Assembly (NCBI RefSeq): GCF_037042905.1
Contig: NW_026974140.1
Coordinates: forward strand, 14,012,001 to 14,076,000
Source: Lytechinus pictus
Taxonomy: Eukaryota
DNA length: 64,000 nucleotides
Direction: 5' to 3'
Shown piece by piece: positions 130 to 62,759 of this stretch. Under the pieces are notes generated by a model, which saw nothing but the letters and a program-made list of their open reading frames with translations, made no database searches and was not told the origin of the DNA. Position 1 is the stretch's first letter. The number at the start of each line of letters is the position of its first letter. The position numbers were made by a program, and so were the translations under genes.

Positions 130-685
130 ATACAAAAGAAATAGTGAGTGGATGACGTAATCAGTCTCCTCGTTCGCATACCGACCAGGATGTGCATATA
201 ACTGTTTTGTGAAATATTATTAAGCGAAAATGTATATAAGAAAGTTATGACATTTTCGCTTAATAATATTTCACAAAACAGTTATATGCACATCCTGGTC
301 GGTATGCGAATGAGGAGACTGATTACGTCATCCACTCACTATTTCTTTTGTATTTCATTATGAAATATTCAAATTTTCTCCTCATTATCAAGTGAAATAA
401 CGTTCAATACCTCCCTGAACTTGTGGAATTAGCATTGTTTAATACTAGGCATATATGGTTCAGTCAAGTTGGTCCCTATTGTCAAATTTGAAAAAAAAAA
501 TTGTATATTCAAACAATAAAAAACAAAAGAAATAGTGAGTGAGGGATATCATCGACTTTCTCATTTGCATGTCACTGAGTTGTGCATATCACTGTTTTGT
601 GAAAATAAGCGAATCTTTAAAATGTGATAAAATTTCTTTATTTATTCAAATCAACATTTTCTGTGGTGGACTTGCTTGACCTTTA
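130..685. mobile_element. Rearranged Kolobok/T2-like MITE (family A); left end replaced by an inverted duplication
   Basis: Body matches 4157..4746; right end GGTGGACTTGCTTGACCTTTAA; 104-bp foldback 130..233/250..353. Confidence 0.85.
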
Positions 686-4156: not shown

Positions 4157-4746
4157 AGGACAAGTCCACCCCAACAAAAAGTTGATTTGAATAAAAAGAA
4201 AAAAATCCAACAAGCAAAATTCTGACAATTTCATCAAAATCGGATGTAAAATAAGAAAGTTATGACATTTTAAAGTTTTGCTTAATTTCACAAAACAGTT
4301 TAATGCACATCCTTGTGGGTATGCAAATGAGGAGACTGATGACGTCATCCACTCACTATTTCTTTTGTATTTTATTATATGAAATAGGGAATATTCTATT
4401 TTTCTCCTAATTGTCAAGTGAAACAACGATTAATTCCTCCCTGAACATGTGGAATGAGCATTGTTTTATACTATATGATTCAGTCAAGTTGGTCCTGATT
4501 GTCAAATGTATGAAAAATGAAATATTGTATAATTCAAACAATAAAAAACAAAAGAAATAGTGAGTGAGGGACATTATCGACCTTCTCATTTGAGTTGTGC
4601 ATATCACTTTTTTGTGAAAAATAAGCAAAACTTTACGGTCATAACTTTCTTATTTTACATCCGATTTTGATGAAATTTTCAGCGTTTTGCTAGTTTGATT
4701 TTCTCTATTTATTCAAATCAACATTTTTCTGGGGTGGACTTGACCT
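4157..4746. mobile_element. Kolobok/T2-like MITE family A, full length
   Basis: TTAA TSD; termini AGGACAAGTCCACCCC / GGGGTGGACTTGACCT; long imperfect arms. Confidence 0.92.
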
Positions 4747-5146
4747 TTAAGGGTATCCCTCCATTTTTAAATAATATGTACTGTGTTCATTTCATGTCAT
4801 ATTTTTATGTATACTGATTTTTAAAGGTGGTGAATAACGATTTCAAGAACGATATCTGCCGAAGAGAAATTGGTACTGAATCCGCCGGAGTTGTTAACAC
4901 GATCCCGCCGGCGAATTGTGCATTTGTGTGCCTATAGGCCTATCTGCCAGGCACTGGATCTGCCGTTACACCGGCAGATTGTGTGCCTAACGCATGTAGG
5001 CCTATACTAAAAGTATAACTTTAGGAACGTATCTGCCAGGTACTGAATCCGCCGCTACACTGGCCGTACGTACAGTGTGCAATCCACTGCCAAATATTAC
5101 ACGTGTACGGTACCGTAATTGTACTTGCAGTTTGGTAAACCATATA

Positions 5147-6652
5147 TTATGGGCAGCCAAAAGGGCCAAAATTAACAATCTCAAAAATAAAGAAACTCAG
5201 AAATAAATGCAGTCTCTAAGAAAAAAAATTGCCGCTTATTAGAAATAAATTAACTTCCTCTGAAATAAAAGTGATGACAGCCCGCGACACCGAAGACCCA
5301 CGAGACCGAGGGCCCGTGAGACCGAAGGCCCGCAAGACCAAAGGCCTGCGAGACCGACTTTTTCCCCCTTCATCGGGTGCCGTGGTCGAGTGGTTTAAGG
5401 CGCCTCGTTGCAGCGGCGTAACAGGTGCCTGTTATCAGAGGGGGGAGGGGGCAGAGCCAAATATTTCCCAGTAATTCCGTCTAGAATTAGTGGCATAACT
5501 AGGATGTCAGTTTAGGGGGCAGTATGGTGAGCACGCGGGAAGCGCGTTCCGAGGGGGCCGGGTGCAGGGAGGAGAGTGTACTCCCCCGCGAGAAGCGCGG
5601 AAGGTCCTACATTCCTTTGAATTGTTCCTCATCTGCTCTCACTAATCTTAATACGTCCTCTGCCTGTTATCGGAGGGGGGCAGAGCAAAACACTTAATAA
5701 TGAGCGCGCGAAAGGCGCTCTATATTATAAGGGGAGTTTTTCCCCTCCCGGGCGAAGCACGGAAGCTCCGACGTTTTCTTCGAATTGTTCCTTGCCTGCT
5801 CCTGCTCTTCCTGTTAATGGAGCTAGGGGGGGAGAAAAATTTCGAATTGCGGAAGCTCCGATGTTTCTTTGAATCCACAGGATCATGAAGCAGAATTACC
5901 ATAAAAATAAACGTTAAATGAGTAGAGTTAATGATTAAGTAGTGTCGGTGAAATTAGGCAACGTAAGTTTATACTAAGTAGCGGAAAACTGCATGCACCC
6001 CTCCCTAGCTGCCCCCTCCCCACTAGCGTAACTACGGGGGGGGGGGGGGCAGAGGGGGCATTCTGCCCCCCCCCCCCTGACGAGCCACAACCCATGCAAA
6101 GACGTATCCCTGCCCCCACCCCCTGACGAGCTTGAAGATCTTTATTTCCCCCCTTCCAAGGGAGCGCGCTTCCAGTGCTCACTACCGCCCCTAATCTTAT
6201 TTTTTTTAATTGTTAAGTTATTTGCGAGATTATATATTTCTGGAAGATGACATTTATTTGTAAAATATACTGCTATTCCAATTATGATATTTTTTTTCTG
6301 AATGAGTCTTATATTTCTAAAATCTTTTATTTATGATGATTGGTGAGATTTATTTCTGAGTTGCCTTTTATTTCTCAATGATATGCATTTCTGGTTAAAT
6401 ACTTATATTTATGACTTATGTAGGCCTACTATTCTTTCGAAGTAATTTATTCATTTCTGAATGCTATATTTCTAAGATACTACTTTTCTTTCTGAGGAAG
6501 TTAATTTATTTCTAAGAAACGGCAATTTTTTTCTGAGAGACTGCATTTATGTCTGAACGACTACATGTATTTCGATCTGAGATACTACATTTATTTCTGA
6601 GAGTTTCTTTATTTTTGATATTGTTAATTTTGGCCCTTTTGGCTGCCCATAA
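5147..6652. mobile_element. Long-TIR element (TTATGGGCAGCCAAAAGGGCCAAAATTAACAA ends) just upstream of PGM2, with GC-rich nested fragments
   Basis: Ends are reverse complements over >100 bp with indels; ATATA on both flanks (5142-5146, 6653-6657). Confidence 0.85.
5280..5359. repeat. 16-bp tandem repeat x5 (GCCCGCGAGACCGAAG consensus)
   Basis: Units start at 5280, 5296, 5312, 5328, 5344. Confidence 0.85.
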
Positions 6653-10400: not shown

Positions 10401-13400
10401 TTATCATTCAAATATGGCACTTTTAAGCTGTTAGGATTTTAATTTAAATACAGTGAAGCTAATGTTTTTTTTTATTTCAATTGAAAATCTAGACCTATAT
10501 ATGCCATTAATCACTTGCTGTTGACAAAGTTTAGATCTGATTACAGTGCATCTTAATAAAAACTAGATAATACTAAATAGGTTCATTATTGCGGAATGAA
10601 ATAATCGCTAGAGGGTATTCATTTGTCTCGCAATCTACATGTACTATGGTCAACAAGGAAATTTGTGATCACTCTCGCCAAAAGTGTTCACTAGCTTTCT
10701 AGGAAATTCGTGATCACTCTCGCAAAAAGTGTTCACTAGCTTACAAGTTCACGAGCTTTCGAGTGCCGCTGCAACTCTTTATCAAGTGACGAAAATTATC
10801 TGATACGGTAGTCAATTTATACCAATCCCCAGGACCGTACATGTACGCACGAACGCGGGAACAATAGGTGGGCACTGATCCGTTATGTGATTGGTCGGGC
10901 GTATATGCAAATAAGCCGGAGGTATATGCAAATACGCCGCGAGTCGGCAATATGCAAATAAGACAAAATTGGCGGGCTCGCTAGTTTCCCGTGGGTGGGG
11001 GTTGACTAGCTGAGCGGTCCTTGCTTGGTCGGGTTGGCGTGCACTGCCACTGCCACTGCCACTGATCCCGCTGTCTCTGTTGAAGTTGTTAGGACAAAGA
11101 CGTATACTAATAGCCTCCTTAATCCTGCGTGTATACCAATGTCTTTCTTTGGCAACGCAATGTATAAAAACTAGATATATACACTTTTGAAATGGCTGCC
11201 AAACAAAATATATATCACTCTTGGAGAAGAGTTCTAGGAAATATAAGTCAATTTTAATATGACACCATACAGTTGGAAACTGCATGTATACATGCTTGAG
11301 TGAATACTGCCTACTTAAAGAGAAATGCCAGTAGTTGCAGTAAACACTGATTTCATGAGAAAGTCTGTAAAACAAGGTTTAATTGTCAGTATATCATCGA
11401 GGATCTAGATCTGGTAGTTACATAAACCGAACTTTGTGAAATCTTGAAATCTACGCTGAAATATGTTCACGCTGAAGATCACTCGCACAGATATGCGCAC
11501 GTGGGGCAGTGTATAATTATTGCTTTGAGCGTCGGGCCCGACGCTTGACCCGAATCCTGTGCTTATTTGCTGATTTCTCAGCAATTACACCATTTCTTCC
11601 AGAATCCTTTGGCACATATGTTTTATTTATACAAACAGACACTTTGGTGGTCATTTTATTAGATTCTGTACGAACTCATTTTGATATCATTACCAAAACT
11701 GGCATTTACCTTTAAATAAAGGGATGTTCCGGGCTGAAAGTATGAATAGTTTAATAGAGTAGAATTCACAGAGCAAAATGCCGAAAATTTCATCAAAATC
11801 GGATAACAAATAACAAAGTTATTGAATTTTAAAGTTTAGCAATATTTTGTGAAAACAGTCGTCATGAATATTCATTAGGTGGGCTGATGATGTCACATTT
11901 CCACTTGTTCTTTTGTATTACATTATATGAAATTAGGTTTATTTAAATTTTTTCCTCCAAGAACTAGAAAAATTGGATTGACAACTGATTTAGTGCATTA
12001 TATATTTATTGCTGCAACTTATTTCATTATAGACATATATTATTCACACAAGTATGAAATAATGAAAAAATTATGATTTTATGTAATAACATAAGAAAAC
12101 TGAAAGTGGAGATGTGACATCATCAGCCCACCTATAAATGAATATTCATGACGGCTGTTTTCACAAAATTTTGCTAAACTTTAAACTTCAATAACTTTAT
12201 TATTTGTTTTCCGATTTTGATGAAATTTTCGGCATTTTTCTCAGTGAATTCTACTCTATGTATTAAGATACAAATATTTTCAGCCCGGACCATCCCTTTA
12301 AATAAAGGGTATGAAAATTAGGCTTGGCAGGAATTAGCCTTCCAATTTCTTTCAGTTTTTTTTTTTAGAGGCAAGTCCTTTGAGGAATTTGTGATGAGTT
12401 AATGATCTATCATGATCAGTTTGTTTGAGAAAATTTCAGGAGTTATTGAATTGAAATTTAATGCATGAGTGAACATGAATTGCAAATTTTAGTGCATCAT
12501 TATAACTTTTTCACGTGGATCTCCACAATTCATAGGAGCCAGGAGAATAGCCGATCAAATAAATTCTGATGTATAATCAGTAATTTATCCAATAAAACAT
12601 ATTTTTAGTTTATATCCTTCACACTACAACTGTATATGCATTAATCTAGTAATGAAATGGAGTAGTGACATGCACTTTCGGGGGGATTTACCAAAATTTA
12701 AGATAGACTTTAAGATAAAGTTTACCGAATAGATGGCAAGATCCTGCGACTACATTTAGCAGGGCTGCCAAGTGCCAACCTTTCATGAGAGACTTGAGAC
12801 ATTGCGAGGGAGTGAAGTGACCAAGGCCAAGGGTGTGCCCAAGGCTGAGCAGGGTGTGGAAGGGGGAGATGAAAGAAAGAGTAAAAACGTAAACGTTCAT
12901 AACTTCAAATTCAACAATGTATGCGGCAAGATAAAAAACATGGATTGTTATGAAGTATTAGCAAAATCTCTGAATTGTATGAATTTAAGGTTGCTACAGT
13001 ATATTCATTTTCTATTATTTTAAAAACATCTTGCCTTCAAATTTCAATGGTTCTTTCAGGCTAATAGTTACAATGTATTACCATGTTTATGATACAAGGA
13101 TCAGTAGTCACTTACACTTGCCATTTCAATAAATATGAAATCTTTCATACTACTATGCTTTGTTGGTATGAAATGTTTGAATGACAAATAAATAAATATG
13201 CCCACTCTATTGTCTTTCAAACGGAAATAAATTGTACCTGTTTCTGATCTCAAAACAACATGACTTTTTTCAACTTAAATATTGAATTGTTTATGTATAA
13301 AGTAGCTTTGTATCCTCTGGAAAGAGCGCTATATAAATCCAATTATTATTATTATTTATTAAAGTCAAAGTTGTAATTGTAGCTCACTCACCTGATTGAT

Positions 13401-16400: not shown

Positions 16401-19400
16401 TGTATTTCTTTTATCTTATTTTATAATCTTCCAGGTATACATTTTTTGTCTGCTGAAGTAAAACCTACAATACTGCAATGATTTGATAACTTCTGTAAAT
16501 AATTCTTCTCTTATGCTGGTTTTCATTAATATGGTTAATAGTTTTCTTGTTGAATGTATTTATATTTCCTTTGTTCAATGTTGTGGTCAGTTTGGGTCTT
16601 ACTATTAATTTTTATCTACGATAATGTTGTTATTGTAAACATGTTCAGTTTGGTCCTTGGAACTTTGTAACATGTACGGGATCTATGTTTTACTTTTAAA
16701 CAGAATGAATAAATGAATAAATAAAATAAATTGTTAATAGGGGATATGTTTGGCATGATTTCATATACATATATTTACCATACCTACAGTGCATTGTTGA
16801 AATTTATTACTTTTAATTCATGCACAATGACATAATTGCATAGAGAAGCATACAAAAATCAAAGCAAATTTTCTTTTTCAGAATATGGCAACCAGACAAG
16901 AAGTCACCGAACTTTTGAATGACCACAACGTCGCAGAGTTGCAAGAGAGGTTTGGGACAAGGATCCAGTTTGGAACTGCCGGTACTGTAAAACAGAAATT
17001 ATATTCATTTTCTTCTTTGCAAATTAAAATTGAAGTAGATATATTTGTATTGAGCCTACATGTATGCAAATACAAAATAAAGATAGGCCTATCATTTGAT
17101 AAAAACATTTAAGTTGGGGAGCACCCAACATCAACAACAAATGCAATGCCACTTGAAGAGGCAAAGTTAGTAGGCCTTTGATTTCAATATTTTAATGACA
17201 AGGCCATATTTCTAATATAGGGCTTAAATGTATTTCTATATACTGTACAACACATACATGTATGGAGAATAAAAAAATGCACAGCAAAACTTTGAAACGA
17301 CCTTCGATGGCAGTGGATTAATTTATGCTCTATCTGGATATCAGTTTAGCCGTCTCTGAATGAGATGAAAATAACCTGTGACTGTTTGCCATCCATCTAA
17401 ACATAATACATGTAATCTAATTTACTTTAAAATTATTGAAAAAAATAGTACTAGCAGTCATTACAGTTCAAGTGAAATTGGTCATTGACGAAACCCATGA
17501 CTTAAGAATATGTCACTCAAAACCATTTCCGTAACTATCACAGAATGCAAAACATCAGGCCTCCTTCAATAGGGAATTCTACTTTCTTCAAATTTTTTGA
17601 ATTTGACCAGAGCTTTAATATACTGATTGGCATAAAGGCAAAATGCAGCATCAGTTGCCATGTCAATGAATAATGCTTTATTTTGATCAATTTTTGGAGA
17701 CTTGTTCATTATACAAGTCCAATTTTAGTGTCTTCTTCCTCTTGTGCTCGTGCAGTACACGTAGGTATGGCATGAATTCTTGATGTGTTTGGGTGTCTAA
17801 ACTCCCTATAGTATGAAATATGCAGCTGACCATAAAGTCAAGTAAGCAAGGGTGTACAGTAGGTTGGTTTGAGAATGGGTAGGTGCATATCTGGGGGAAG
17901 GTGGAACTAAAGTGGTATGGGGGTGCACATCTTGGGGAGGTGGAACTAGAGTTCGGAAAATCAGCTGTTGAAAGAAGAAGGGGTACAAATGTTGCTTTGC
18001 TTGCCAGTGTCGGAACTCGTCTGCCTCAGTGGGAGGGTGCACATGCACCCAGTGCACTCCCCCCCCCTAGCCTAGGCCCTTGGTAAGTAAGCTCCTTGCC
18101 CAAAAGGATATAAATCTTCTTATCAGTTGCTACCATTAAACCTTTTTATATAAGCTATCAGTTTCCTATTAACCTGTAATATGATATATTTCTTATCTGT
18201 ATCTGAATGTAATTACAATACAAACCTTTTGGGAAAATCAAAATGGATAGTAGTAGTTAGGCCTGGTAGTTAGTAGTATATTCAAAGTTTTAAATCCAGT
18301 TTTGTCTCTGTGAACAGGGGTTGCCGGATTTATCTCACACACGCATTAATCTCCTTACCCCTCTCCCTCCACTTTTGCCCGATTCAGACAGTGCATCAAA
18401 TAGTGGCACTGTGAAACTAATTACTTCAACTACGGCTAAGAAGACAGTGACTGAATTACAACTATTTACTACTAATATTGCTTCCATTACTACTACTTAT
18501 ACCACTACTGCTACTAGTACTACCACTAATATTTCTACTACGACTAATACTACTACTACTACTACTCCTACTACTTCATCTACTACTACGATGATGTACT
18601 TCTGCTACTAGTACTACTACCAGGCCTGCTACTACTACTACTTCTACTATACTACTACTTATCTCATTTGCATTTCACTGAGTTGTACATTGTACATAAA
18701 ACTGTTCAGTGAAAAAAAAGAACAAAAAATGAAATAAATTTGAAATGTCATAACTTTCTTTTTTAACATCCGAGTTTGATGAAATTTTCAGCGTTATTTT
18801 TCTCTACTGAATTACTCAACTTTTTATCTAAGGTGGACTTGACATGAACATCAATCTGTTTATACACTTTAGGTCTGAGAGCTGCAATGGAAGCTGGTAC
18901 AGCGAGAATAAATGACCTTATAATCATTCAAACAGCACAGGTATTATTTATATTATTTTTATATTTCAGTGACACTGAGCATACATGAAATGTATATGTT
19001 TTTTCCCTAAATCTATAAAAAAGATCAAAATAATGAAAATCAGTTAGCATGATTCAAAGCTATTAAATACCTCTTTTGGAATTACATGTAAAGTCATAAA
19101 ATGATGTTTTGATATGTACATCTCTCCTCCCCCACCTCCAAAAGAAATATTTTTCAATATAAACAGTTACAGAGGCCTAATTTATATTTTTGGTAAAGCC
19201 ACTTTTCTATCAAGGGCACATTCCAATTACTGTAGAAGCTGTTATTTTCGCGGGGGTTTTATTTTCGCGGATTTCGCGAATTGCCGATCGGCCGCGAATT
19301 TAACAACACGCGAAAATATTGACACACTTCTTAGTCAGTGCCAATGTACCCAACAGCAAAGCTTTGCTATTGAAAACATACTGTGTAGTGAGAAATTGGA

Positions 19401-22400: not shown

Positions 22401-25400
22401 AGGCTATCTCAATTTGACCTTTGCCCAGAAGAGCTCACATGATATGTATGTCCAATGCTATGCACACAAATGTATAAATTGACCTACTTATATGAAAAAT
22501 GCAAATAAACTGCATTCAACCTCTTGTCAGCTTTAGTCAATGCACAGACTTGATTATACAGTTAGATTACACAATCTCCTTTACCATCTTTAATACTAGG
22601 AAAAGATCAAAATAAACTTATGACATTTTGAGATATGCATACATTTTGATAATCAGAGTAGGCCTATCAATACTGCTATAAGAAAAGCAGATCTTTAAGA
22701 AATGTTTAAATTAAAGAACTAAGTACTGTCATTATTGTTTCATCAATGCAAATTCACGTGGTGCAGATTGATCTCATACAGTATGTGCTATGCAAGAACA
22801 GATTAATGGTCTTGTTGTCATACAGCAATGATATTCTGCTGTGATTTACATTAGTTAATTGTATTTTGGGGTATTTAAATACTTGAGGATAGTGTAAATG
22901 AAGCAGGCAAGTGCCTATGCAGCAGTAGCAGGAAATCTCGTCTGTCAATTGAAGATTATTGGCCTTATCTCGATCTGACTGAATTCATTTGCCCCACTTA
23001 GCAGAAAAGTTTATGGGAGTTCTTACACGTTAGCCTTAAATTTTTAGTGACAGAAATATATAACTCAAGTAATATGGCTAATATTTGAATAGTTCACTGT
23101 TTATATCTTATAATTTGTAAGGATAATATTTCACAAATTTGTCTTTTTTTTCACTCTGTACATATGTCATGAATTATTTTTGGCGTGTTTTAGGGGTTGT
23201 GAATTTTGTAGAAAACACCGCTTTAAAGGGTATTTGCTCTTTTTAAATCTGAAACTGGTATGGCCCACGTTAAATGTCTCTTGAAATTTGTACGAAATTC
23301 ATACTTCGCCAAAATATGTTTACAATCAGCTGCTGACACTTGTATGAGAGGTCAAGCTTCAATGTTTGTGAAAATATGAATTTTGTCTTAATTTATGGCT
23401 TCCTGAAATCAGTTGTTCCTGTATGAAACCTAGACAGAAATTAAAGAATCTCAATTGTCAAAAGGTTTCATGTAGATGACAGCATCAAGAGCTTACCGGA
23501 TAGCATTTATATAGCCCTGTCTATCTAGTTGCCTCTTCAGATGTGTATAATGAAGTTTTGCTGGTCATTGTAGCAAAGCACAGTTTTGTCTGCCCCTTTA
23601 TATTGTGGATTTATATTTGATTGATGTCTTTATTTCTTTTTCAGGTATGCTCACTTAACTGCTTCTATTATGCTACGAGCAGGGATACCTGTCTACCTCT
23701 TCTCAGATATAGTGCCAACGCCTTTTGTGGTATGTATATATGTAGTTAACTTGTCAATGGTAATGTAAACCATTTTAGTGTGGCACTATGCTATTGAAAT
23801 CTCTCATGATGTTCCTGTGACTTTAAGAAACAATCCTGGCTCTAGCTTTATCGGCTTTCACAGATGCATTCAAGGAAAAGATCATACATGTGCCAGAGAT
23901 GAATTTGTTTCCAGCATGCTATAGATTCAGCTACCTTTAAATGCCAATTTTTTATTTTTTTATTTTAGCCATATGCAATTCGGAAGTATGGGTGTGCTGT
24001 TGGTGTCATGGTTACGCCCTCCCACAATCCTAAAGGAGACAATGGGTACAAGGTATACTGGAACAATAGTGCTCAGGTACAATGTCTTTCTTTTTAAAAG
24101 TCTTTGTAATTGTAAAGCTATAGCTGTAGTTAGCCACAATTCTGAATGTATTGCTTCCCCCTAAACTGTAGCTCAGTTGTTCTGTATATTTATCCATTTA
24201 TATGACTTACTCTATTGTTAATCCAGGGTCAAGAATAATATTTTAGGTAGTCCAGGATAGAAGAGTCATGACCTTTTTTTATATACACTTTAGGCCCATG
24301 CAATGTTTTTTAATGGTTTTTCTTATCAATTCGAGGGTGCTGATTCCGAATATGAATGATGCCACTCTTGTAACCTTGAGCATTTTCCCCAAATATGCAA
24401 AATCCAATATGGTCGCCTAAATATTGCCCATGGAAATCACAAAATTGCATGTACATTGACCATGAAATGCCTGTAATTATGACACACAAGTGAAATAATG
24501 TCTAAAAACATGATTTTTGACAAAATAATCATTTCCTTGATATTAGAAATGGGTGCTAGACTCCTGTATGCTCTATTATGTGCAATATGAATCAATAAAG
24601 CTGTTTTTCACAAGAGGGAGCAGTAAAATTGTAATCTATGAGTGAAGTACTGTCTGAAAAAAGTGAAAACATGATTGCTAACCAAATATGTCATTACTTA
24701 TGTCACATATGTGATTTTGATATTCCAAATGGCTGCTATATGCCCTATACTACCTCACTATATTATGAACAATTTGAGTGGGGACAAATAATCTTAACAA
24801 AATTTGGCTTTGTTTGACTACAAAATGCCTATAATTGTGATGTAAGAGTGAAATATACTGTTTGGCAATATGATTTTTAATGTGTTTAATTTCCTTTGCC
24901 ATAAAGATGGTAAATGCAGTATTTTGAAATTCAAAATAGCCACCATAGGCTATAACAGTATCATACAATGCGAATGGAGATTCTATACTTTTTAACAAGA
25001 GTGGGCATCATAAAATGCATGTAATTGTGATTTTATAGGTAAATTGTTGTCTGGAAGCATGATTTCTAACAAAATATATAATTTTTTCTGCCATGTAGGT
25101 ACTGTATTCTGAAATTCAAAATGGCTGCCATGGGCCTTCAAAGTATTTGCATGTATGTACAATGTGAATGGTAACAATTCTTTTTTACAGAATTAGGTTT
25201 TGCTTCACTATAAAATTAATGTAATTGTGTTTTATGCCTGAAATATTGTATGAAAACATGATTTATAATGAAATAAATCATTTTTCCTGCCACATATATG
25301 ATAAGTACTGTATTTTGAAATTGAAAATGGCTTTCATAAAGTATACAGGGTTCTATGGCAGCCATTTTGAATATCAAAAAAATAAATATATTGTCAAAAA

Positions 25401-41299: not shown

Positions 41300-42030
41300 G
41301 TCTCCACCCACTATAGGTGGTATCAGTGGCAATATGATTCCGGGTTGTTCGTCCGTCCCCCCCCCCCCCCCCCCCCCCGTTTTTTTTAAAATGATAACTC
41401 AAGAATCCATTTGACGGAATGACTTCAAACTTAGATCTTGTATGTATATGGGAATGACAATGATTTGATTAGTTTTGGGGGTTTTAGGGTCAAAAGTTGA
41501 AGGTCACAAAGGTCATTGTATACCTCAGATGCCTTGTTCTTGCGATAAGAATGTATTCTTTTGTTGGCATATGTTGGCCCTGATAAGGACAACCCAAACT
41601 CAATGTACCATGAAACTACTATACTCTTATTCTTCGCCTTGAAATCCTTCAGAAACTACAAGCTCTTGACATATTATCTTCAAACTGGGGTGATGAATGC
41701 ATATTGTAGTGATGATTTTCTGACAAGTTTTTCAGGCTACAAGGTCAGAGGATCAAGGTTACAGAGATGGCTTGTACTTGTGGTAGCTCATTAAACATTT
41801 GAGGTATCTACTTCAAAATTGGAAGATGTTTGCTTACTGGAGTGACAATGATCTGATTAGTTTATGGGAACAGAGATCAAAGGTCAAATGTCACAGTGGT
41901 CATTCATCTTAAAATCTATCTTATTTGTTATAAAACAAGAACTTTTTGAAAGATTGACTTCAAACGTGATTTATGTATGCAAGCATATATGAATGACAAC
42001 GATCTTTAGTTTTGGGGAATGGGCATGTTG
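41300..42030 (+). mobile_element. Degenerate HINE-like element
   Basis: GTCC microsatellite/poly-C, then diverged core units with AAAGGTCA motifs. Confidence 0.5.
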
Positions 42031-43640: not shown

Positions 43641-43962
43641 TGCTTTCACATAAAGGTAAGGTCGCAATGACCATACCCAGCGACCGATCAAATCATGATG
43701 TGAAAGCATTTTATTGTACTCAGTGACTGATTGTTTTGGTAAAAAATGATCGGTCGCTGAGTATGATCGGAAAGGTACTACAGCGACCGATCGAAATGCC
43801 CTTTTCATCCTTTGTGACGTTAATGTGCATCGCGTAAAGTATGCGCAGATAATGATGTGCACAAACCTAAAGCGACCGATTACTCTAGGCCTATCCAAAT
43901 TTTGACGGTGGTGTGAAAGCACATCCGATCGGTCGCTGCGACTGTACCTTGATGTGAAAGCA
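43641..43962. mobile_element. MITE with TGCTTTCACAT TIRs
   Basis: TGCTTTCACATAAAGGTA / TACCTTGATGTGAAAGCA; internal AGCGACCGATC repeats in both orientations. Confidence 0.75.
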
Positions 43963-45194: not shown

Positions 45195-47130
45195 TTATTT
45201 AAGATGAAATAAATATAATGCACAATGCAGATACAGAAAATTATTTATTTTTTTCATTAGAAAAGTAGACTGTAAAAAGATAAACTTAAATATATTTATT
45301 TTCATTCAATGCGTCCTTTCAAAAAGATAAGAAAATGTAACTAGAAACAGCTTTGCTCTTGGTTTTTTTTATATTCCTCTTTGAATTCATATTATTTAGG
45401 GGTAAAGTAGGGCATTGTTAGTATTCATAATTATATATGTACCTCAGGTCAAATTAGGTTTTGTTTTGTTTCTCGACATAGCAATTTGATTGCTCTTTTT
45501 AGTGCCACAAAATTTACTTGTTTGTGTGTGTACAGGCACCTTTAAAGGTTATCAGATTATAATCTGAATGTTTCAAAATAAAGTCATATAACACCAAAAT
45601 TTGTGGCATTTGAAGTATACGTCATTTTATTTGTGTACATTCATATACTGTATATACAGTATTAATCTTAATTTGTTACATGTTTATCAATTTATTAGTT
45701 TATCTGTTTGTTTTTCTTATTTCTTTTTATTTCTCATTTTATTTATTCATTCATTTTACTGAACATTCATTCACTTTTTTCATTAATATATTATTTTATT
45801 TATCTGTATGAGTAGCCTCAGAAATTCATTAAGTGAAATTTGAAAGTAAAAAGTCTGCTAGCGGCTCTGTCAAACAATTTTGCGCTGCTGATTTATGGCG
45901 AAAAAATGTTGAGGGGGCATAATGGCCTTTGGGACTGAAAGGGTTCAATATTTGTATGATATGATTTGATGATTTTTGTACTGAAAAAAATAAGCAGACT
46001 GGTTATAGGCCTATTGGATGTGCTTCTCAGCCAATCAATAAAAAGGTGTTCACTGAAATTAATAAGTGCTGATTGCTGACAACTTTCAAGAAACGCCCCC
46101 AGAATCTTATTGTCTTCTGGTATTTACAGATAGGGGCAGCGGAACAGTTTTGATAGTGGGGGGCTGACCATGCAAAAAAAATCAAAGATGATAATTTTTA
46201 CGATTTTGGACACGGCTCCCCCCCCCTTGTTTTGTGGCCCTTGAGACACCTTGAAACTATTAAACCAATGGATCATCTGTTTTGATTTTATTTCAGAAAA
46301 TTAATCCCGATAGATAACCAATATTGATATACTTTGAGATTGAAGACTCTCACCTCTAGTACTAGTAGATCATTAAAAATGGAGTGGTTGTAAAGGAGAA
46401 TTATAAAGGCACTTCAAAATATAGGCTCTTATACACGCACATGTTACCTTCTTAGCATTTTGACAAAATTTAATATTTAAGGCTTCCTACAATAAATAAG
46501 CAGGATATTAAAGGATACAGGTTTCCCAGTGAAAAGAATAGAACTAAATTCGTCGTTCTAAGATTAAACAATTAGTAATGAAATCGGGGACAAGCAGTGA
46601 ATTATTAAGACAATAAGGAAGGAAAATAAGCGTAATTGAAAGTGAATTGACCTTTCTAAACCGAAGTCTGTTTTCCCCGGACGTTTTAGTGTCATTTCCC
46701 AGGTTCCTGAACAGGTTGTTTTTCTTGGAATTTTAACTGAATGTTGTACATGAACACATATTGGCATCGAAATGGTGATTATTATCATCTGTCGTGATGT
46801 ATGAAGAGGAAAGGAAATGATCTGGCCACCAATTAGCATGCTGGGGATGTGGGGGGGGGGGGCAGGGGCGAGTGCAGGTACAGAAATCATAATGATGGAC
46901 AAAAGTGATTACGATGTTCAAATCTACCACCACCTATTTCCAATAGCACTATCACCACCGCAGGGGTGGGGACTTCGACCACAGGTGTTGTACTTATCAC
47001 CTGTCATTGTATCTACTTTAATAAATCATGTAAAACGTCTCCATGTGTACCTTCATTAGAGCCTGGATCAACGCCAATGCTCTGCTCGATCACGTGCCAA
47101 CCAATTTACTCTCCAGAACAATTTATACTT

Positions 47131-51991: not shown

Positions 51992-53397
51992 TTCAATCTT
52001 TCATAACAAAGTATAGTTTTTATGTTCAATCTCCAATTGTTTAAAATGGTATTACTAAAGCTCATATAGTAAACAGCGTTATATGAAAAAAATGAAACAT
52101 ATTAATGTAAACAAATATGAGACGACAGTCGCGTATTATATTTCAAGTAGTAAAAAGAAGAGAGGAAAAAGAAGAGAGAGAAGGGGACACTAAGTAAAAG
52201 GCTAAAAGAGGAAAGAAAAGTACTTTACAAAATAGAAATATTTGTTTTGCTAATTAATAGGAAAGCCTAAGCCGTATATGCGTATATACCATGGGAGGAT
52301 GGGAATTAAGTGAAATATGTGATCTTGTATATGGAACGTTATTTGGTAAAAGAAAAGGAATAATGATAGAACTCACATACAATTTCCCCTTTTCAACACG
52401 GGAGCTTAATTGTTATTTAAACGTAACTATGGTTTTATAACAACAGCAGATTAATCCTGTAATAATTGGTAATTGATGGCAATCTCAACGTGTAAAATAA
52501 TTTTGATCAGTCACACCAAGAAGACCTACTCCAAACCGAACGATGATATGCCATTCGAAATAACGTAATACCTTTGATTGGTCTGGATTCAGTTTCTGGG
52601 TGTGACTGAAGCATTTTTTATAAAACCGAATGCTCCTCTACTCATAATTTCTCTTTGCAATCAGGGGCTATCTGACGCACTCTGGGTGAGATGATTGAGC
52701 ACCATTAATCTGCGTTATGTTTTCAAAGATCATGTCAATATTTGTCATAACGCTTGATTATCATCTATCATCCGCTCCTCTCACGGGATCACATTGTATG
52801 TTATTATGAACTGGTGTCATAACACATGAATGGAAGTCATATTACATTGGTCGCAGTCAGCTAGATAATGTTATGGTAAGGTATACATCAGTAGTCTATG
52901 ATACTCGATGCCCTTAATGCAGATGTATAGGCCTATATATTAAAATTCGTTTGTAAGCCTATGTCTTTTTTGGAAACAATCTAGTGTGGTTTTGTTAATA
53001 TAAAGTTATATTTATTTAAGTTTCAAACAAAACCTATTAATTCATCTTTGGATATCTACCTATATGAGCTTCATTCTGTTTTGGAAGTTTTAGATTTTGA
53101 AATTTGTATGTACTTGTCATGACATAGGCTACAAATGGACAAATGCATAGGGATTTATTTATTGCATGGCAGTGATTTTGTAGTTACTTAAAATTCAAAT
53201 CGAATAATCAACTACGCCAATCTAGGAAAACACTCTAAGACTTCAAGATGCATGGGGGGTGGGGCAATCTGCATCCACATTTTTTTATGACTGGTAAATT
53301 AGCAGATTTTCTAGTTTTCTTTTCGCTCGCTACGCCTGATCGATGTAAATTCAGGGCCAGTTTAGATGATCGCATATCGTTCGCAATGATAATAGTA

Positions 53398-53871: not shown

Positions 53872-56800
53872 TAGGCCTATACAAATTTTCTAAATGGCAA
53901 AATATAACATTTCCAAAAGAAAGTACTTTTTGTCCATACTCGCTGTAGAATGACATAAACAAAAAGGTGGCGCAGGTTGATTTCGGAAAGCAAGCAAATC
54001 TGATCAAGACAATCTGATCGGACTAATATAATGCATATAATGTCTTATGCGTATATTGTTCAGATGATGAAAATGGGTTTGATCACTTTTTACATCTAAA
54101 TTGATGTTAATTCCGAAGCAGTATAGGTGGACCCAACCAAATACATAAATCAGATTGATGCCCATGCGGCATTTACATACTATAAAATACTCTAATTTAA
54201 ACAGTATGGATTTAAATAATATTTCAGATCGACTAGTGACCAATGGAATTCAGGATTAATTTGAATCCTTATTCATAAAATAACAAAGATTTCATTTTTT
54301 ATTCTCACGATATTTATTGTCTTATACGCCTCGATGAGAAAAAATGGCAGACAGGTGGTTGTAGAAGACTTGTAACAGCATGGCACTTTTTTTTTGCTCA
54401 TCCCTTGATTAATCCTATAATGAGACATTGATATAAAAACGACACGCTGTGCATCCTGTTGAGAGTGTGCGTAGAAACACTGATAATCCAAGGACATTTG
54501 CAGAGCAGATTGTTTAATCCCACATGTTCCTGTATTCTTCACATAATAGTTGGAGGCATGGGAGAATGGTGAGTTTGATTGAAGATAAAGTTCTATTTTG
54601 TTGAGATACTAGCTTCGAATGTTTATCAGAAAGGAAGATCAATTCGAATTATTATAGACGCTGACTTGACTTGATGACGCTGGTAACAAAACTAAAACAT
54701 GACAGCAGTTGGCAATTTTGTGTTATTTATTGCATGTATATAGTGCTACTGCTGCTATTATGATGATAACGATGATGACGAAGACGACGGTGACAATAAT
54801 ATGATACCGACATAATGTTGATGATATGCCAGTAGAGTTATGAGACAAAAGTTTTGAGGGGAAGAACAGGCCTACGTACGGGGGGGGGGGGGTTACTTGT
54901 AAACAGCGAGACAGTGAGTTAAAACTTGACATTTTGAATATAAATTGTGATGAATTTTAACATTAACATCCTAATGATTTCAGATTTTTACCCTTCCATG
55001 CCTTACTTTTTCTTGAAGTTTTCTCCTTTTTTTTTCTTTCGGTCGTGGAACATGGGGGGGGGGGGTGTAACCGTGAATGACTCATGCCTGCCTCATCTGT
55101 ACCACAGTGTGTGTTGAGGAGGACGATATTATTATGACAATGGTCATAAAGATAAAGTCACACGACGATTATAAAAATGCTGCTGATTATGTTGTTGATG
55201 ATGATAATACTACTGCTGGTGGTGGCGATGATGAGGAGGAGGATGGCAACATTGACTTATTCAGTCAAATGGATTTTCAGTATCAATATTTTGTTAAATA
55301 TACATTGTTTAGTCTATAACAGAATGTCATCTTGTCATGTCTTTATATCAGTCACATCGAACTTGTAGCCCGAAGGTGACACATGATAATGTGTCATGGT
55401 ATTTAAAGGTGTACGTCAAGTCACCGTTCAAGGTATGTAGGCAAGGCTTATTATAATTATGAAGTCATATCGTTATGCATGCTGAGATCAGGGGTATTTT
55501 GATAGGAGGGGGGGACGACTGACTCAACTGAATAACAGGTGTAATTAGAGTTACGCGACATATCGCTCTTTATGTCTATATTCTCTATGTCTTTTACTTC
55601 ATCTTTCCTCTCCTTTCTCCTGTTTGTTTGTATTTATTTCCATATAAAAAGAGTAAAACAAATCATATATCATAAAAATATAAGATCAGTACTGATCTTC
55701 CATGGGTCTTTTTATTCATTACTTGAAAAATCATAGAGGGTGGTCGCCCCCCCCCCCCCCCACGTGGCGCCGCTTCTTCCCTTTTCAGTTGATGTAAATA
55801 AATGTAATTTAAAAGAGATAGACTTCACTTATTTTCCTTTAATTATGTCAATGTTTTTGTAATATGGAAAGGTAAGGGCAAAGGGGCAACGACTCCATAA
55901 GATTTTTCAAGTAGTGGGGGAGGTGAAAATAAAGAAGAAAAAGAAGAAAGCGGTCTAGAGATTACACCGTCAATCAAAAATGACGTTACCTTTATGTTGT
56001 CTTGCCCTTATCGAAACACTCTTACGCTGCCCCTGTGCATTGTGTTACTAAAATGTTAGAATAGAGCGTATACGATTACATGTATTTGTACTTTTGTAAA
56101 ATTGTTGGGAACTTTCTAAAGCTAACTACTATTTTAGCTCATTTCTTAAGCCGTGCGTATAACTTTAATTAAAATTTACACTTCTGAGAACAGTGGTGTT
56201 GAAACGACATTGATTATAGACACAAAGCATTACATGGTGTTGAATTTATAGTGTTACTTGTGTAAGTATAACACATTTTGTTTGTTGTTTCAATACTGTT
56301 TTGCGTTGTGTTCAATCATGGTGTATTTTGAACACCTGTCTTCAACGTTATTTTGAAGTTAAGTTTGTTTCCTCGTTTCTTTCCATAATTATTCGCAGCT
56401 TAATAAAACACATATAGGCCCTAAATGAATTGCTAAATATAGGCATAATATATAGATCTCTTTCTACGCAGTCATATATCTTCCTGAACCTAAACGAGGC
56501 AATTGATTGCCTATTTTCTCGTAACCCATGTTTCGTTTCAAATTGCATTTCAATCAAGCAATCCCCCTTTCTATCAAACTGCCTTCTAATTAATGCTCTT
56601 ATTTTCAACTTAAAACTCCAATCTACCGACCATATAAAAATAAGTGAATGTCCGTTGTGCTTTGACACTACTTCTAGTCTATCTCATTTGCCAAGTGGAA
56701 TTCAATTTCCAATAAGCCAAACGAAAAGGACGATAGGTTTTCTTTCTTTGAAAGTATTCTGACCTACCGTTATATACATGTATAAATGCACTTTATTCGT

Positions 56801-59800
56801 TCGACTCCAGTCATACTTTTATCCTCAGTATAACCCAATTTGAATGCATGAAATACTCGTTTCCGATACAGCCATTATTTCATTTTGTATAATTATGAAC
56901 CGTTGAGTGATGAACTTGGCATGCCAACTCATGAAATAAGAAGTCAATCCAAATTGCAATTATTTACGAATATCTTTTACGTTTGTATGACCTAATAGAT
57001 GTATACATTATCAGATAAAGAAAAATTAGTCGATAGGTCGATACATGGGTACAGAATACAATGTCAGCTTGAACAATAGCTTACATTATTGGTGGGGTCG
57101 CCGCCCCCCCCCCCCCCGCCTACCCTGACTCTGAGAAAAACTTGATATGGTTTAAATGGTTAACATTTGGAATTGTTTATAGGTATATCTGTCACTATAT
57201 TCGTCGAAAATGTTTGCTTTATTTGCTCGCAACTGTTAAGTTATTCCATACGTCATGTTCTAACCCATTAGTACGCCACTGATCTTGAACACTATCCGGT
57301 GAATGTTTTTCGTAACTTTTAAGTAGGCCTACGTGGTTCTTTATTTATATATAAAAATATACGTAAAAATACGATAGGAAAAAGAAACAGTTGAAAATTC
57401 TATTATTTCTCATTTATTTTCTTTCAAACGCTTAACCACGAATTTGAAGGGTTTAAAATAGATATGTTTGAACCTGACTATCCCGTGAAACAGTGTCTTT
57501 ATGTCGTTTGTGTTTTGTGTGACCGGGGTGTTGCTATTGCAAGACCATGCAGGAGCGAAGTAATATTGGAAAGTTATCCTTATAACGAAAAAACCCGAAA
57601 CCAATCAAAAGCTCATGATCGCTTTCAAACTGAAAAACGAGAGGATAAGCACATGCATTGGAACAATCAAAGTGCACTCGGTATCATTACTACAATATGA
57701 ATATAAGAACGTGAAGAAGGGACATGAGAAATGTGTGTGAGAGAGCGAAAGAAAGGTCCGATTGACGACAGCCCGGATAAAAAGTTTTAAGAGGGGGGGG
57801 GGTTAAAAGTGAAAGATAAATAATGAGAAAGAAAGATGGTAGAGGGAGAGAAAGGAAATGTAAGAGATATCATAGAAAGGCAAGGAAAGGGAAAAGAAAG
57901 AGAAAAAAAGCGAGAAAGATGTTGAATAAAATTAGAGTAACTGGTGCAATGGGGGGGAGGGGGTATTACTGAAATAAAGTGAGGGAGGAGACCATGGTTT
58001 CAGATAAACTAATGTTAATTAGGATAAATCCTGTTAGCTGGTTATAGGAGACAGTTCATTTGTATAGGTAGACAGATAAATGAAATAACTATACAATTTG
58101 AAAAATAACAACGAACAAAATAAAAATAAGTAATGGATGAATTTCGAGGAAATTGCCGCCGGTTATCAATTTTGCAATTTTCAGAAACAAAATAATAGTT
58201 CAAATTCTGTTCTCGCGAATAGATTTTTTTAACCTAATCGATATTGTTATATTTAGATAAAATAGAGCACGAAAAATATATATGTTACCATTATTATACA
58301 TTGGCACATCTATCCGTTATACGAGACAGTGGCACGGATATAGTCTCTCCGTGATTTAGCCTGACAGTGAAATCCCATACGGTAGGGGAAAAAATGTATG
58401 ATTAACATAATCAAATTAACCAAAAAATAATAATTCTAGATTGAAAATTTTGGCTTTTTCTTTGATTTTGAAAAGCAAGTATGGTTGAATTAGCACTAAG
58501 TGGTTTTATCACTTCGACAATAAAATATGTCGCTGGATGTCTGTTAAAAGTGGTAGATTAAAGTGTAGAGTTGGGTGGGTCGACCCCTCAACCCCCCCCC
58601 CCCCCTTTCCTGGCGTGGACTTTTTTTTTCTCCCATTTTATTGTTAATTAGAAAATTGTGATTAAGACTTTTCTCCTCAAATAAATTAAACAAATATGTT
58701 TGGTCCTACTGCTCCCCTCCAGGTTACGAGGCGATGCCAACCCCCCCCCCCCCCATTATTTCCAGTATCTACTCTCCCACTTCCAATATGATGCGGTGCT
58801 CGTGGGCACAGTTCATTTCGTATATGAGTTCATGCAAGTTTTAATAGAATCGTACCTTTCTTTGGATAGGTTTCACTGACAGAACCAGGTCATCACCAAA
58901 GAGCTTCCGAGAATCGCTTTCTACAGACTGAAAGAAATTCGTGAGAAATAAGCGAAAATGTCATATTGTATAATTGTATATTGAAGATATTGTATAATAG
59001 AGAGGGGGAACAGAGACGATGGGACGACAGGAGGATTTAAAAAAAAGCAGAGGGATGGATGAGCGTTGACATAGCATCAACAAGGAAGGAAAAAATCGAG
59101 TAGGGGAAAACGAATAGGCCCCTTCCCCAAACAAACAAATAAACAAGCAAAACAATACAAAGCAAAAACAAAACAAAAGAGAGAGTGCTTTAGAAATTCA
59201 AGTAAAATTGCAACCATGCCTGTATTATAACCATATTCTTATTGCTTACTTTTTTGTACCTTTTTTAAACTTTCAAACGATAAGGAGCAGTTTACATCTG
59301 CAGAAATTTACTACAAATAAACAATATATTTCACTGGAAAGCCTAATTGCGTATAAATTGCAATTCTTAATAAATTTAAATCTAAATACACGTGCCTGGA
59401 AAGACTATTTTTGACATTCAGTCATCCAAAAGAAATATTTCAAGAAGAACAATCCATTTTTATAATTCAAGAAAAATCCATGTAGTCAGAAGACAGTCAT
59501 AATGCTTTTCTTCCAACTGCTTTATAGAGGTCATGATTTAGTAAAAGTTACAGAGATAGAGATTTCGAGAGAAAATATCCAAAAAAAATTAGTTCTTAAA
59601 ATGCTTTAAACAACAAGCCATCAGCTCGCAACTAGTATTCATGAGAAAATAAGTCGTAGAGTGTTGAACAAAGCAATCGAGGGTCGATTTGAGAGGAGAC
59701 TATGAAAGAAATCACTCCGAGGATCATTCGAAAATCCATCGTTGATTTCTTCTAACTCTTTTCGATATAATCACTCTAAGAAGCACGTTTCATGGATAAA

Positions 59801-60499
59801 CTTTGGATCTATCATGTCTCATTCATGAAGGATCACCAAGGATTTTAATTAGTGTTTCCTCTATACTCCTCCCCCAAATGTATTGATTTCTTGTTTTGCT
59901 GCTCAATTCATTTTAAATCATGTACACCTCTCCGTTGAGATGTGTATTTTCTGCTCATTCAAATAGGTAACTTGATATTTAAGTAACATTTTGTACACGT
60001 AGGAGTGGATCCAAGGTGTCAGAGATTAATGATTTTTATTTTGAAAGGCTCTCGCTACCATCAATCGTGTTTCGCCAAAACGAGACAGGCAAACAAGAAC
60101 AAAGTCTATTGCTCCTTCTAGCAATCAAACAATGAAGGGTGGTGATTTCGTTCCAGGTCTGTTCCTACTTTCATCTTAAAAAGGTAATACAATAGGGGCA
60201 ATATTTATCGCAGGGTACTAAATGTTTGCAAATTTTAATGAAAAGGAAGCAAACTTCCACTGTACCCCCCCCCCCCCCCTCTTCCCGGCCAGATAATTTT
60301 CTTAAGGCAGGAATACTGACAACACTTAGTGTCTTTCGAATATATCAGATACCCATAAATAGAAACCATCAGAAAGAAAAGGGCATCAGAAGTATACCAG
60401 GTCGGTACTGAACCTACAACCTCCGAAAATAATGGTTAGACCGCTTGACCGCGGAGCCTCTCGATTTTTCTTTTTGGAATATGTTCAATAACTGATCTG

Positions 60500-60656: not shown

Positions 60657-62759
60657 CAGATCCCATTTGGATAAGACAGTATACAAAAAAAATATATTGA
60701 CATTGCTTGCCGGCGACTTCGTACTGAATTACTATATAGGCACAACGCGAGATAAAAATAGACATCCCTGTATTGATGTACGGGGCACTGTTATCCGTTT
60801 TGACGTAACAATTTTCGGTCCTGAATTTATTTTGACTCACCACTTTAACTTGCCTACCCGTGTCAATATCTTCGTCCATCTTGGAGATTGTTTCGCTCCC
60901 GATAATTTTGAAGAAACTTCATAATGTCTCCTGTAGTTATTTTTCCTTTTAATATGCCACCTCCTCACGTTCGACGGATGATGTAGACTTGACAAGTCTT
61001 CTATATCACTGTCATCTCAATATTTCGATTTATTTAAATCAGTTTTGTATTTCTGCTTCGTTTGTCATGTTATTAGCAACTTTTCGGGGATGAGAAATTT
61101 TTTTATGAAAAAAAAAAATATATCGAGCAAACTATTAAGTGAATTAACGTATTGTTGAAATCACCATGTTGCTCTTTAAATCACGAAAAAAATAAAGAGA
61201 GTTTAATTGTGCTTTTAGTCTGGCTTCGGCGCATTTTCAGTGTCGGGTGTCGATTAATACTTGTTCGTCTGTAGGCCTAATGGCTTGTCGGTTATTCTTC
61301 GCTTGCATAGATTCACTTCATGGTAAATGTGGTGCCTATATGAAAGTTTTGCTTGTCTGCGGTAAGTTTGTTTTAGTAAGCATTTTGGTCAGGTTAGGTC
61401 TTATTTTCCATGTTACGTTGATGTAATTGGTGAATCGATAAATGGTCTTTTCTGTATCGTTCTTGATAATGTAATGGAGGTATTGATGACTTATGCAGAA
61501 CCAGGGGCTATCCTGTTAAATGAAAACTGTTTCTGTGATGCAGGTCTTCTGAATCCAGACTCACCCCCTCGTGAATCAGCTGAAAGGTTACACGTTTTTA
61601 GGTTGTCTATGCTTAAGGCTGTCATTACCATCATAAGCTTGGGGCTTTGACTTAGTATTTACATTATGATCTTCTTTTCCTCTATCTAATTATGCATAAT
61701 CGGACTTTCATCCTTCTCCGCTGGTTAAAGGTGAGGTAAATCCTATTGTGTCCTTATGTAAACTATATATATAACTTAAACTTAAAATCACTTTTCTTTT
61801 AATGGCAACACGTAGTTAAAGAATATAGAATTCGAATTTGATAAGGCCTATACGATCTTCTACATTTACATATTTTTAATTGTTGATCAGGCTACCTGGA
61901 TATGACTTTCAAGTTTTATTGGCCCTATGCTTTGCAAGACTTCCATAATTATGTCCCCTCCACTAAAATTGAAAAAAAAATATGGAGAAGGTTTATCAAG
62001 AATTATCTAACGTATATTTAAGAGATTTAAGAAGGAAAAGTTGGATACATACCAAAATATGGCTTTATTCCGTCAAAATTTCGAGTGTGTGTAATTCCCA
62101 ATGGTATCGGTTTATTTAGTCAGAAAAATAAATACCCAATACTCTTGGAGAGTAGACTAGTCGTAATATCGGTTGATAACCATTATGAAACCCATGGCTT
62201 TCACAGTTCCTGCTAGCTCATTGAGTAAGGCGACAGACTGGAGATTCATCGTTCTGCAGCAAGAGGTTCGAATCCAAGTTCCAGCCGGAAGTAAGAAGAA
62301 AAATAAAGAAGAAAAAGAGAATGAAAGAAGGGGGTTTTGGAGAAGAATTTTTTTAAATTAGTGGAGGGGACATAAGGAAGTCTTTCCCTATATGCTTAAA
62401 TAAATGAAATGAAATGAAAAATTATGTGCAGCAATTGCACTTGGAATGAGAAAAGAGTGATTTTTTTAAATATAGAATGTTATTTTTCTACAAAATGTGG
62501 GTGAAATTATTGGTACCGAAACGAACTTGGTCACATTTTTAATATAGATAGACAGCACCAGGGACTATCCGAGATGATTAAACCGGTTGCATTATATACG
62601 CAGGTATATATTATCTCTCCCGGTGCTATACTTTCACATCTTACCTAGATAGTGTAATGCGTGCATGTATGTATATTTAACACCTGAAAATATTTATATA
62701 CACTATTAGTTGAAATATGATTTATTTTTACACGTGACCATGGTAGTGATGGTAATTAC

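Follow-up and report, generated by a model that had tools for sequence, protein, structure and literature searches.

Palindromic TA words in the Lytechinus pictus genome as probable excision scars of cut-and-paste transposons with GG...CC ends

The comparisons described here suggest, with good confidence, that most copies of the palindrome TAGGCCTA in the genome of Lytechinus pictus are excision scars of cut-and-paste transposons which integrate at TA and possess GG...CC ends. The stretch of DNA under study (hereafter 'the window') comprises 64,000 nucleotides, C20:14012001-14076000, of an assembly totalling 811.7 Mb in 368 pieces, and a sequence-only reading had listed eleven positions of TAGGCCTA in it and proposed a new class of transposon footprint. 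As we picture the process, integration would duplicate the TA, and upon excision the transposase would cut the non-transferred strand within the element, at a distance of two letters from either end. A 3' overhang consisting of TA and two letters of the element would thereby remain on each flank, and end-joining would fill in and ligate the flanks to yield TA-GG-CC-TA, that is, six letters more than the original TA. Such scars would be neutral, would build up at ~0.1% of the TA sites and would subsequently decay through point mutation. While we infer a 2-nt staggered cut and end-joining repair, a 3-nt GGC overhang joined through its self-complementary GC would give the same word.

A search of the window returned exactly the eleven positions listed, and the accompanying estimate that fewer than one would be expected from composition proved correct: 100 dinucleotide-preserving shuffles gave a mean of 0.52 (maximum 3; none of the 100 reached 11) and an order-3 Markov model gave 0.49, and, homopolymers set aside, no other 8-mer in the window deviates as strongly from this model as TAGGCCTA. 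The next palindromic outlier, TA repeats aside, is TACATGTA, with 14 copies versus 2.6 expected from the order-3 model. The top 8-mer outlier overall is GGGGGGGG, and homopolymer runs of 10-22 G or C letters are seen at 17 places of the window (e.g., 41357-41378, 2681-2695 and 60265-60279). Genome-wide, TAGGCCTA has 66,473 sites, corresponding to ~1 per 12 kb (the density in the window is ~2-fold that of the genome) and to ~0.10% of the ~64.7 million TA; together with the 224,046 sites of TACATGTA, the two words sum to 290,519. The reversed word, which was used as a control, has 3,425 sites genome-wide versus the 66,473 of TAGGCCTA, but it contains a CpG and is thus a weak control, so that other control words were chosen. 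The 16 words TAGG-NN-CCTA, when pooled, have 5,230 sites genome-wide, which is the control level and represents no enrichment; unlike its +8 relatives, the exact 8-mer is thus enriched. A genome sample of 355 kb contains 39 copies of TAGGCCTA, compared with 8, 7 and 4 copies of the palindromes of same composition TTGGCCAA, ATGGCCAT and AAGGCCTT, and 39 of the 82 AGGCCT hexamers of this sample fall within TAGGCCTA. Neighbours differing by one mismatch exhibit a modest excess. The +7 form TAGG[G/C]CCTA makes up ~84% of the 80 TAGGNCCTA matches listed (17,295 in total) and exceeds expectation ~9-fold, as would be expected if one of the ends now and then left three letters behind instead of two (3+2), and the imprecise forms TAGGTCCTA and TAGGC-TA are present in MITE contexts. 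The region C1:730870-731213 holds five TAGGCCTA in 300 bp amid many TCTAGATCTAGA-like words and TAGG/CCTA words; scar-like palindromes seem to have piled up locally here, or to form a low-complexity repeat.

The polarity of the change was deduced from paralogous repeat copies within the one genome assembly. Using blastn within the window, the family-A MITE copy at 340..560 (plus strand) was aligned with paralogs at 4390-4585 (plus strand) and 32983-33180 (minus strand). The alignment with 33180-32983 has 86% identity and one clean 6-bp gap at AATACTA[GGCATA]TATGG, this paralog being free of the insertion, and the copy at 4390-4585 reads ...TATACTATATGA; the earlier claim of a 6-bp insertion in this MITE copy is borne out by both. 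What stands at 446..453 is TAGGCATA, which indeed differs from TAGGCCTA by a single letter. We considered TAGGCATA as a separate scar class and rejected it: 25 of its 39 copies in the 355 kb sample belong to one C1 tandem array and the remainder is close to expectation, so that the window's TAGGCATA is best read as, and probably is, a decayed or imprecise GG-CC scar. The array itself (approximately C1:751350-758000) is built from ~58-bp units, each CCCCCCCCTGTTG-TAGGCATA-ATCGTTAC, and inflates the counts of TAGGCATA.

A genome-wide search in which two anchors are fixed and the gap between them may vary retrieves every copy with extra letters at a given TA, and the insertion spectra obtained in this manner, which may be described as unbiased, come from three unrelated repeat contexts. 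In all three, the copies with extra letters at the TA are mostly TA-NNNN-TA palindromes. For the family-A MITE context ATAC-TATA-TGG, 1,528 copies were found unfilled genome-wide, while 67 carry 4-8 extra letters, the latter including 26 exact TACATGTA, 5 TACWGTA (TACAGTA/TACTGTA), one TACCGGTA, one TACTAGTA and 2 exact TAGGCCTA, along with decayed forms, TAGGCATA of the window among them. A third exact TAGGCCTA at this TA was provided by a separate search, in a copy with a variant right anchor. The context AAG-TA-TCAC yielded 5 TACATGTA, 2 TAGGCCTA, one TACTAGTA and one TACCGGTA genome-wide, and the context TTG-TATA-ATTC, likewise genome-wide, yielded 5 TAGGCCTA, four of which are located at the G-TA-T position, 5 TACCGGTA, all of which are located at the other TA, 4 TACATGTA and 2 TACTAGTA. 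The occurrence of TACCGGTA and TAGGCCTA at different TAs suggests that they stem from different transposases, each with a target taste of its own. In this context (TGAAATATTG-TATA-ATTCAAACAAT), the TACCGGTA class, which includes CpG-decayed as well as +5, +7 and +8 variants, is confined to the second TA, TAGGCCTA favours the first TA (G-TA-T), and TACTAGTA and TAGATCTA are present too.

Across the three contexts there are ten exact cases in which TA has become TAGGCCTA; where several copies of a MITE are scarred alike at one TA, they could go back to a single scarred master, so that these ten cases may represent fewer events. If, for the most cautious count, every position in a context is allowed a single event and the paralog cases are added, at least eight independent events of this type remain. 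On C1, where 200 kb were compared, a clean +6 at TA versus two to three paralogs is exhibited by each of the sites 674196 and 781213. The scar rate at the MITE site, 2 in 1,595 copies, agrees with the ~0.10% observed for all TA. A net insertion at TA relative to the unoccupied site is thus seen in repeat copies and paralogs, with window sites 43886 and 4935 as exceptions.

The flanks of the scars likewise resemble those of transposon targets. Half-site flanks of TAGGCCTA are symmetric, R-TA...TA-Y, with a pyrimidine at +1 in 81%, A at +2 in 40%, T in 43% and A in 13% at +3 (the background around TA being flat), and T at +5 in 30%; G is found beside the scars in 36% versus 18% in the background. 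The flank profile of TACATGTA is like that of TAGGCCTA, with less C at +1. The symmetry of R-TA...TA-Y supports a target-like preference.

It is well established that footprints of Tc1/mariner elements consist of the first or last 2-4 element nucleotides between TA dinucleotides, and that Sleeping Beauty leaves TACAGTA or TACTGTA after end-joining (PMC6943129). The scars described here share with this system the TA duplication, the terminal letters kept between the TAs and the repair by end-joining (PMC6943129), and TACWGTA and TACATGTA, the latter of which corresponds to 2-nt retention, are found at the same TA sites. The core, however, is GGCC, whereas that of Sleeping Beauty/Tc1 derives from CA..TG ends, and the source ends must hence be GG..CC and not CA..TG. 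Moreover, Sleeping Beauty footprints are products of assays, whereas the 66,473 copies counted here are fixed or segregating in the germline of a wild genome. GC-rich GG... termini are also characteristic of the ISL2EU / PIF-Harbinger (PHIS) elements, but PHIS duplications are AT (ISL2EU), TWA, CWG or others, and not TA (PMC4482050). Specifically, ISL2EU as the source would need a duplication of AT at A-AT-T (PMC4482050), whereas both the scars and the GGGGAAGGCGGGGTAAGTTG family introduced below have TA; since ISL2EU/PHIS elements duplicate AT, TWA or CWG, their scars would not read TAGGCCTA and they are excluded. The window does contain, at 787-957, a 171-bp MITE with GGGCCCGTTTCATAAAGGACTTGC inverted ends and CTG on both sides; a CWG duplication of this kind would agree with membership in the NuwaI group of PHIS elements (PMC4482050). 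While the mechanism of excision footprints is already known, GGGGAAGGCGGGGTAAGTTG as a candidate source is new here, and the literature searched, with incomplete coverage, contained no report of TAGGCCTA or TACATGTA as a genome-wide record of scars, nor of the GG-CC class or of scarring on such a scale.

In order to find a source, 355 kb were scanned for TA-flanked inverted ends beginning with GG. Most candidates turned out to be internal to larger repeats, and one survived: an 880-bp element (L050:2172-3051) with GGGGAAGGCRGGRTAAGTTG ends, TA on both sides and no target duplication beyond the TA. A hAT element with TAGGGG ends was rejected as an identification, the L050 copy being devoid of an 8-bp duplication. 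The exact terminal inverted repeat GGGGAAGGCGGGGTAAGTTG is found at 1,060 ends genome-wide (374 + 686), corresponding to ~530 copies, and the family exhibits 20-bp inverted ends in the arrangement TA-GGGG...CCCC-TA and hundreds of near-identical copies. This shows that TA-targeting elements with GG..CC ends exist in the genome and were recently active; TA-duplicating transposons with such termini, as envisaged by the sequence-only reading, are thus at hand with ~1,060 perfect ends. TA directly precedes ~95 of the 100 GGGGAAGGCGGGGTAAGTTG ends listed and the DNA beyond the TA is variable. The letter before the TA (G in ~63% and A in ~33% of the ends listed, by hand tally) is frequently not the same at both ends of a copy, and thus belongs to the flank and not to the element. 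Paired ends are mostly ~0.87 kb apart, without a long reading frame between them, and some are 1.4-3.5 kb apart (e.g., C2:35150081-35153009, C2:41660011-41663539 and C2:32702059-32704047); putative autonomous copies may be among the latter. This family (GGGGAAGG...) combines a TA target-site duplication with terminal inverted repeats, as is asked of IS630-Tc1-mariner elements, and among its 95 TA-flanked ends listed six read ACATG before the TA; provided that T precedes, the TA into which these elements inserted may have been part of an older TACATGTA scar. When compared with Tc1/mariner MITEs by ends and TA alone, GGGGAAGGCGGGGTAAGTTG elements likewise have TA on both sides, inverted ends and R-TA-Y targets in an alternating AT context, but their ends start with GGGG instead of the usual CAG.

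The letters of the scar core are the terminal letters of this resident TA-duplicating family with its ~1,060 exact ends, and we infer that the GGGGAAGGCGGGGTAAGTTG family, or relatives of it, made the scars. Its preference for G before the TA agrees with four of the five TTG-TATA-ATTC scars being at G-TA-T and with the 36% versus 18% of G beside the scars. By hand tally, the outer flanks of the family are variable with a bias to A-T-R-T-R before the TA, and A is found five letters out from the TA in ~74%, for which the scars have no counterpart; agreement of the scars with the hand-tallied family is limited to the three positions next to the TA (C/T, A, T/not A). Since the scars lack this strong A, GGGGAAGGCGGGGTAAGTTG may be one source only, perhaps a late one, and not the main one. 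Three other candidates were dismissed. The GGTGGGCTGATG 'MITE' (window 11876-12134) has the flank ATGAATATTCAT in all of its copies, and its TA-GG is thus internal to a larger repeat; the GGTCGGACTCAGCG ends are preceded by a conserved AAGTACCTCT; and GGCGGAGGCTGCAG (C1:779044) has a conserved ATCTA upstream of nearly all 127 ends.

Sources of the CA..TG class are obvious. At 131..352, the window contains a TA-flanked MITE with CA..TG ends, TA-CAAAAGAAATAGTGAG..., which form perfect 16-bp inverted repeats; it belongs to the very abundant family A, with TA-CAAAAG... ends and unrelated DNA beyond the TA, and ends of this type would leave TACATGTA. The second obvious source is a Tc1 element of 1.7 kb at C1:664112-665816 (L007:4112-5816) with ends TA-CACTACTCAAAAAAAG (TA-CACTAC...). 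Its uninterrupted frame of 380 amino acids matches HTH_Tnp_Tc3_2 and DDE_3, and, judging from the sequence, the element may still be active.

Six letters might also be added at TA without full insertion and excision, for instance by abortive strand transfer through a transposase or by another TA-specific nuclease with templated repair, and we regard this as unlikely. In its favour, a donor element was not encountered at any scarred site: the search for a GG-ended element sitting in the family-A MITE TA gave two unclassifiable filled sequences and nothing clear. Furthermore, ~530 GGGGAAGGCGGGGTAAGTTG copies face 66,473 scars, and in the outer flanks the family and the scars differ in their preferences. 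A few copies hopping repeatedly would, however, leave many scars per element, and an invariant GGCC core calls for an invariant template, such as is provided by element ends. In addition, the letters typical of Tc1/mariner ends are those of the parallel classes CATG, CWG, CCGG and CTAG, and the resident Tc1 element has TA-CA..TG-TA ends and an intact DDE_3 transposase frame.

Comparison with paralogs at individual sites of the window bears both on the excision of GG..CC-ended elements, which we prefer, and on the explanation that TAGGCCTA arose by chance, by point substitution from near-matches such as TGGGCCTG, or by multiplication inside repeats. The latter fits the site at 43886..43893, which is due to point substitutions and not to an insertion: about 27 paralogs of equal length read CTCTGGGCCTGACC or close variants thereof, with TGGGCCTG as the near-match, versus CTCTAGGCCTATCC in the window. 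On C1, the paralogs at 760553 and 762124 both carry the word, and the sites at 661005 and 697700 are each one letter away from a paralog. The order-3 expectation is 2.4 copies in the 355 kb which hold 39, or ~5,600 genome-wide. Of the 66,473 sites, roughly 8% would thus be due to chance and substitution, and 43886, as one of these, fits the background of ~0.5 per window. In contrast, the site at 6421..6428 shows +6 at TA, 8 of 13 paralogs being exactly 6 nt shorter across 70 nt centred on the site (the paralog at C10:27245599 reads CTTATG-TA-CTATTC); these 13 were obtained by a search with the 70 nt of DNA, an exact-anchor search for paralogs having found none. The site at 4935..4942 is of complex origin without a clean +6, since seven paralogs read TGTGTGCC-TAGTACCGTA-TCTGCCAGG where the window, at equal length, reads TGTGTGCC-TATAGGCCTA-TCTGCCAGG. 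At 4997..5004, the word lies within ~41 extra bases at the equivalent place of the next repeat unit, and paralog matches end before it. The segment 4880-5060 consists of two adjoining repeat units with TAGGCCTA in both at the equivalent TAGTACCGTA position, which may have been hit repeatedly or repaired badly. At 53872..53879, the word adjoins the end of a dispersed repeat, and its first TA comprises the last matched letters of that repeat: six paralogs match through ...AGAGTG-TA and then stop, which fits, though falls short of proving, a scar in the TA flanking the repeat. The sites at 17084..17091 (27 bp from a TACATGTA), 22659..22666 and 46006..46013 are in unique DNA which matches only itself in the genome, and the count for the window is completed by 52928..52935, 57324..57331 and 61272..61279.

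Polarity within the window is thus represented by one +6 site (6421), one substitution (43886) and one same-length replacement (4935). A substitution origin, named beforehand as what would speak against the footprint reading, is realized at 43886, while 6421 shows the insertion instead. The proposed GG..CC footprint class as such stands on the net +6 events, the R-TA...TA-Y flanks and the resident GGGGAAGGCGGGGTAAGTTG family; it does not cover 43886, nor does 4935 show the clean +6. As the main cause, substitution is refuted by the clean +6 at TA in many contexts, and its share of ~8%, the unenriched TAGG-NN-CCTA words and the flanks render it quite improbable as a general explanation. In agreement with the sequence-only reading, these flanks are unrelated at the 11 sites of the window, as they are at 28 further sites, and a single dispersed repeat family as the carrier of the word was rejected because flanking sequence is not common among the 39 sites.

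The surroundings of the two words differ. Within ±500 bp, the observed/expected ratio of CpG is 0.84 for TAGGCCTA, 0.58 for TACATGTA and 0.72 for random places in the 355 kb, where some sites are clustered, and the difference between TAGGCCTA and TACATGTA has p = 1e-4 (Mann-Whitney; 355 kb, with some sites clustered). On a bias toward open chromatin, which the sequence-only reading had asked about, this bears only indirectly. That selection kept or spread TAGGCCTA as a palindrome with a binding function (insulator, promoter or transcription factor site) would agree with its CpG-richer surroundings, but integration preference explains the bias equally well, TAGGCCTA arises de novo in MITE copies at the genome-wide rate per TA, four other TA-NNNN-TA words behave alike at the same TAs and the flanks bear a transposon-like target signature, so that this explanation appears very improbable.

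If most TAGGCCTA are excision scars, it is tempting to speculate, albeit only tentatively, that the genome represents a countable and class-resolved fossil record of germline transposition, in which ~66,000 GG-CC scars and 224,000 CA-TG scars were left by different transposases with different chromatin tastes, the former in CpG-rich and presumably unmethylated DNA and the latter in CpG-poor and presumably methylated gene bodies. Both words could then act as built-in reporters of past germline methylation and transposition rates. Excision scarring would also explain a striking k-mer anomaly which might otherwise be mistaken for a regulatory motif, and the TA-GGGG...CCCC-TA family provides a concrete element for testing. 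Finally, while footprints are usually studied assay by assay, here one 8-letter word would mark tens of thousands of excisions, allowing one to estimate how frequently cut-and-paste elements move, where they land and how germline breaks are repaired in a wild animal.
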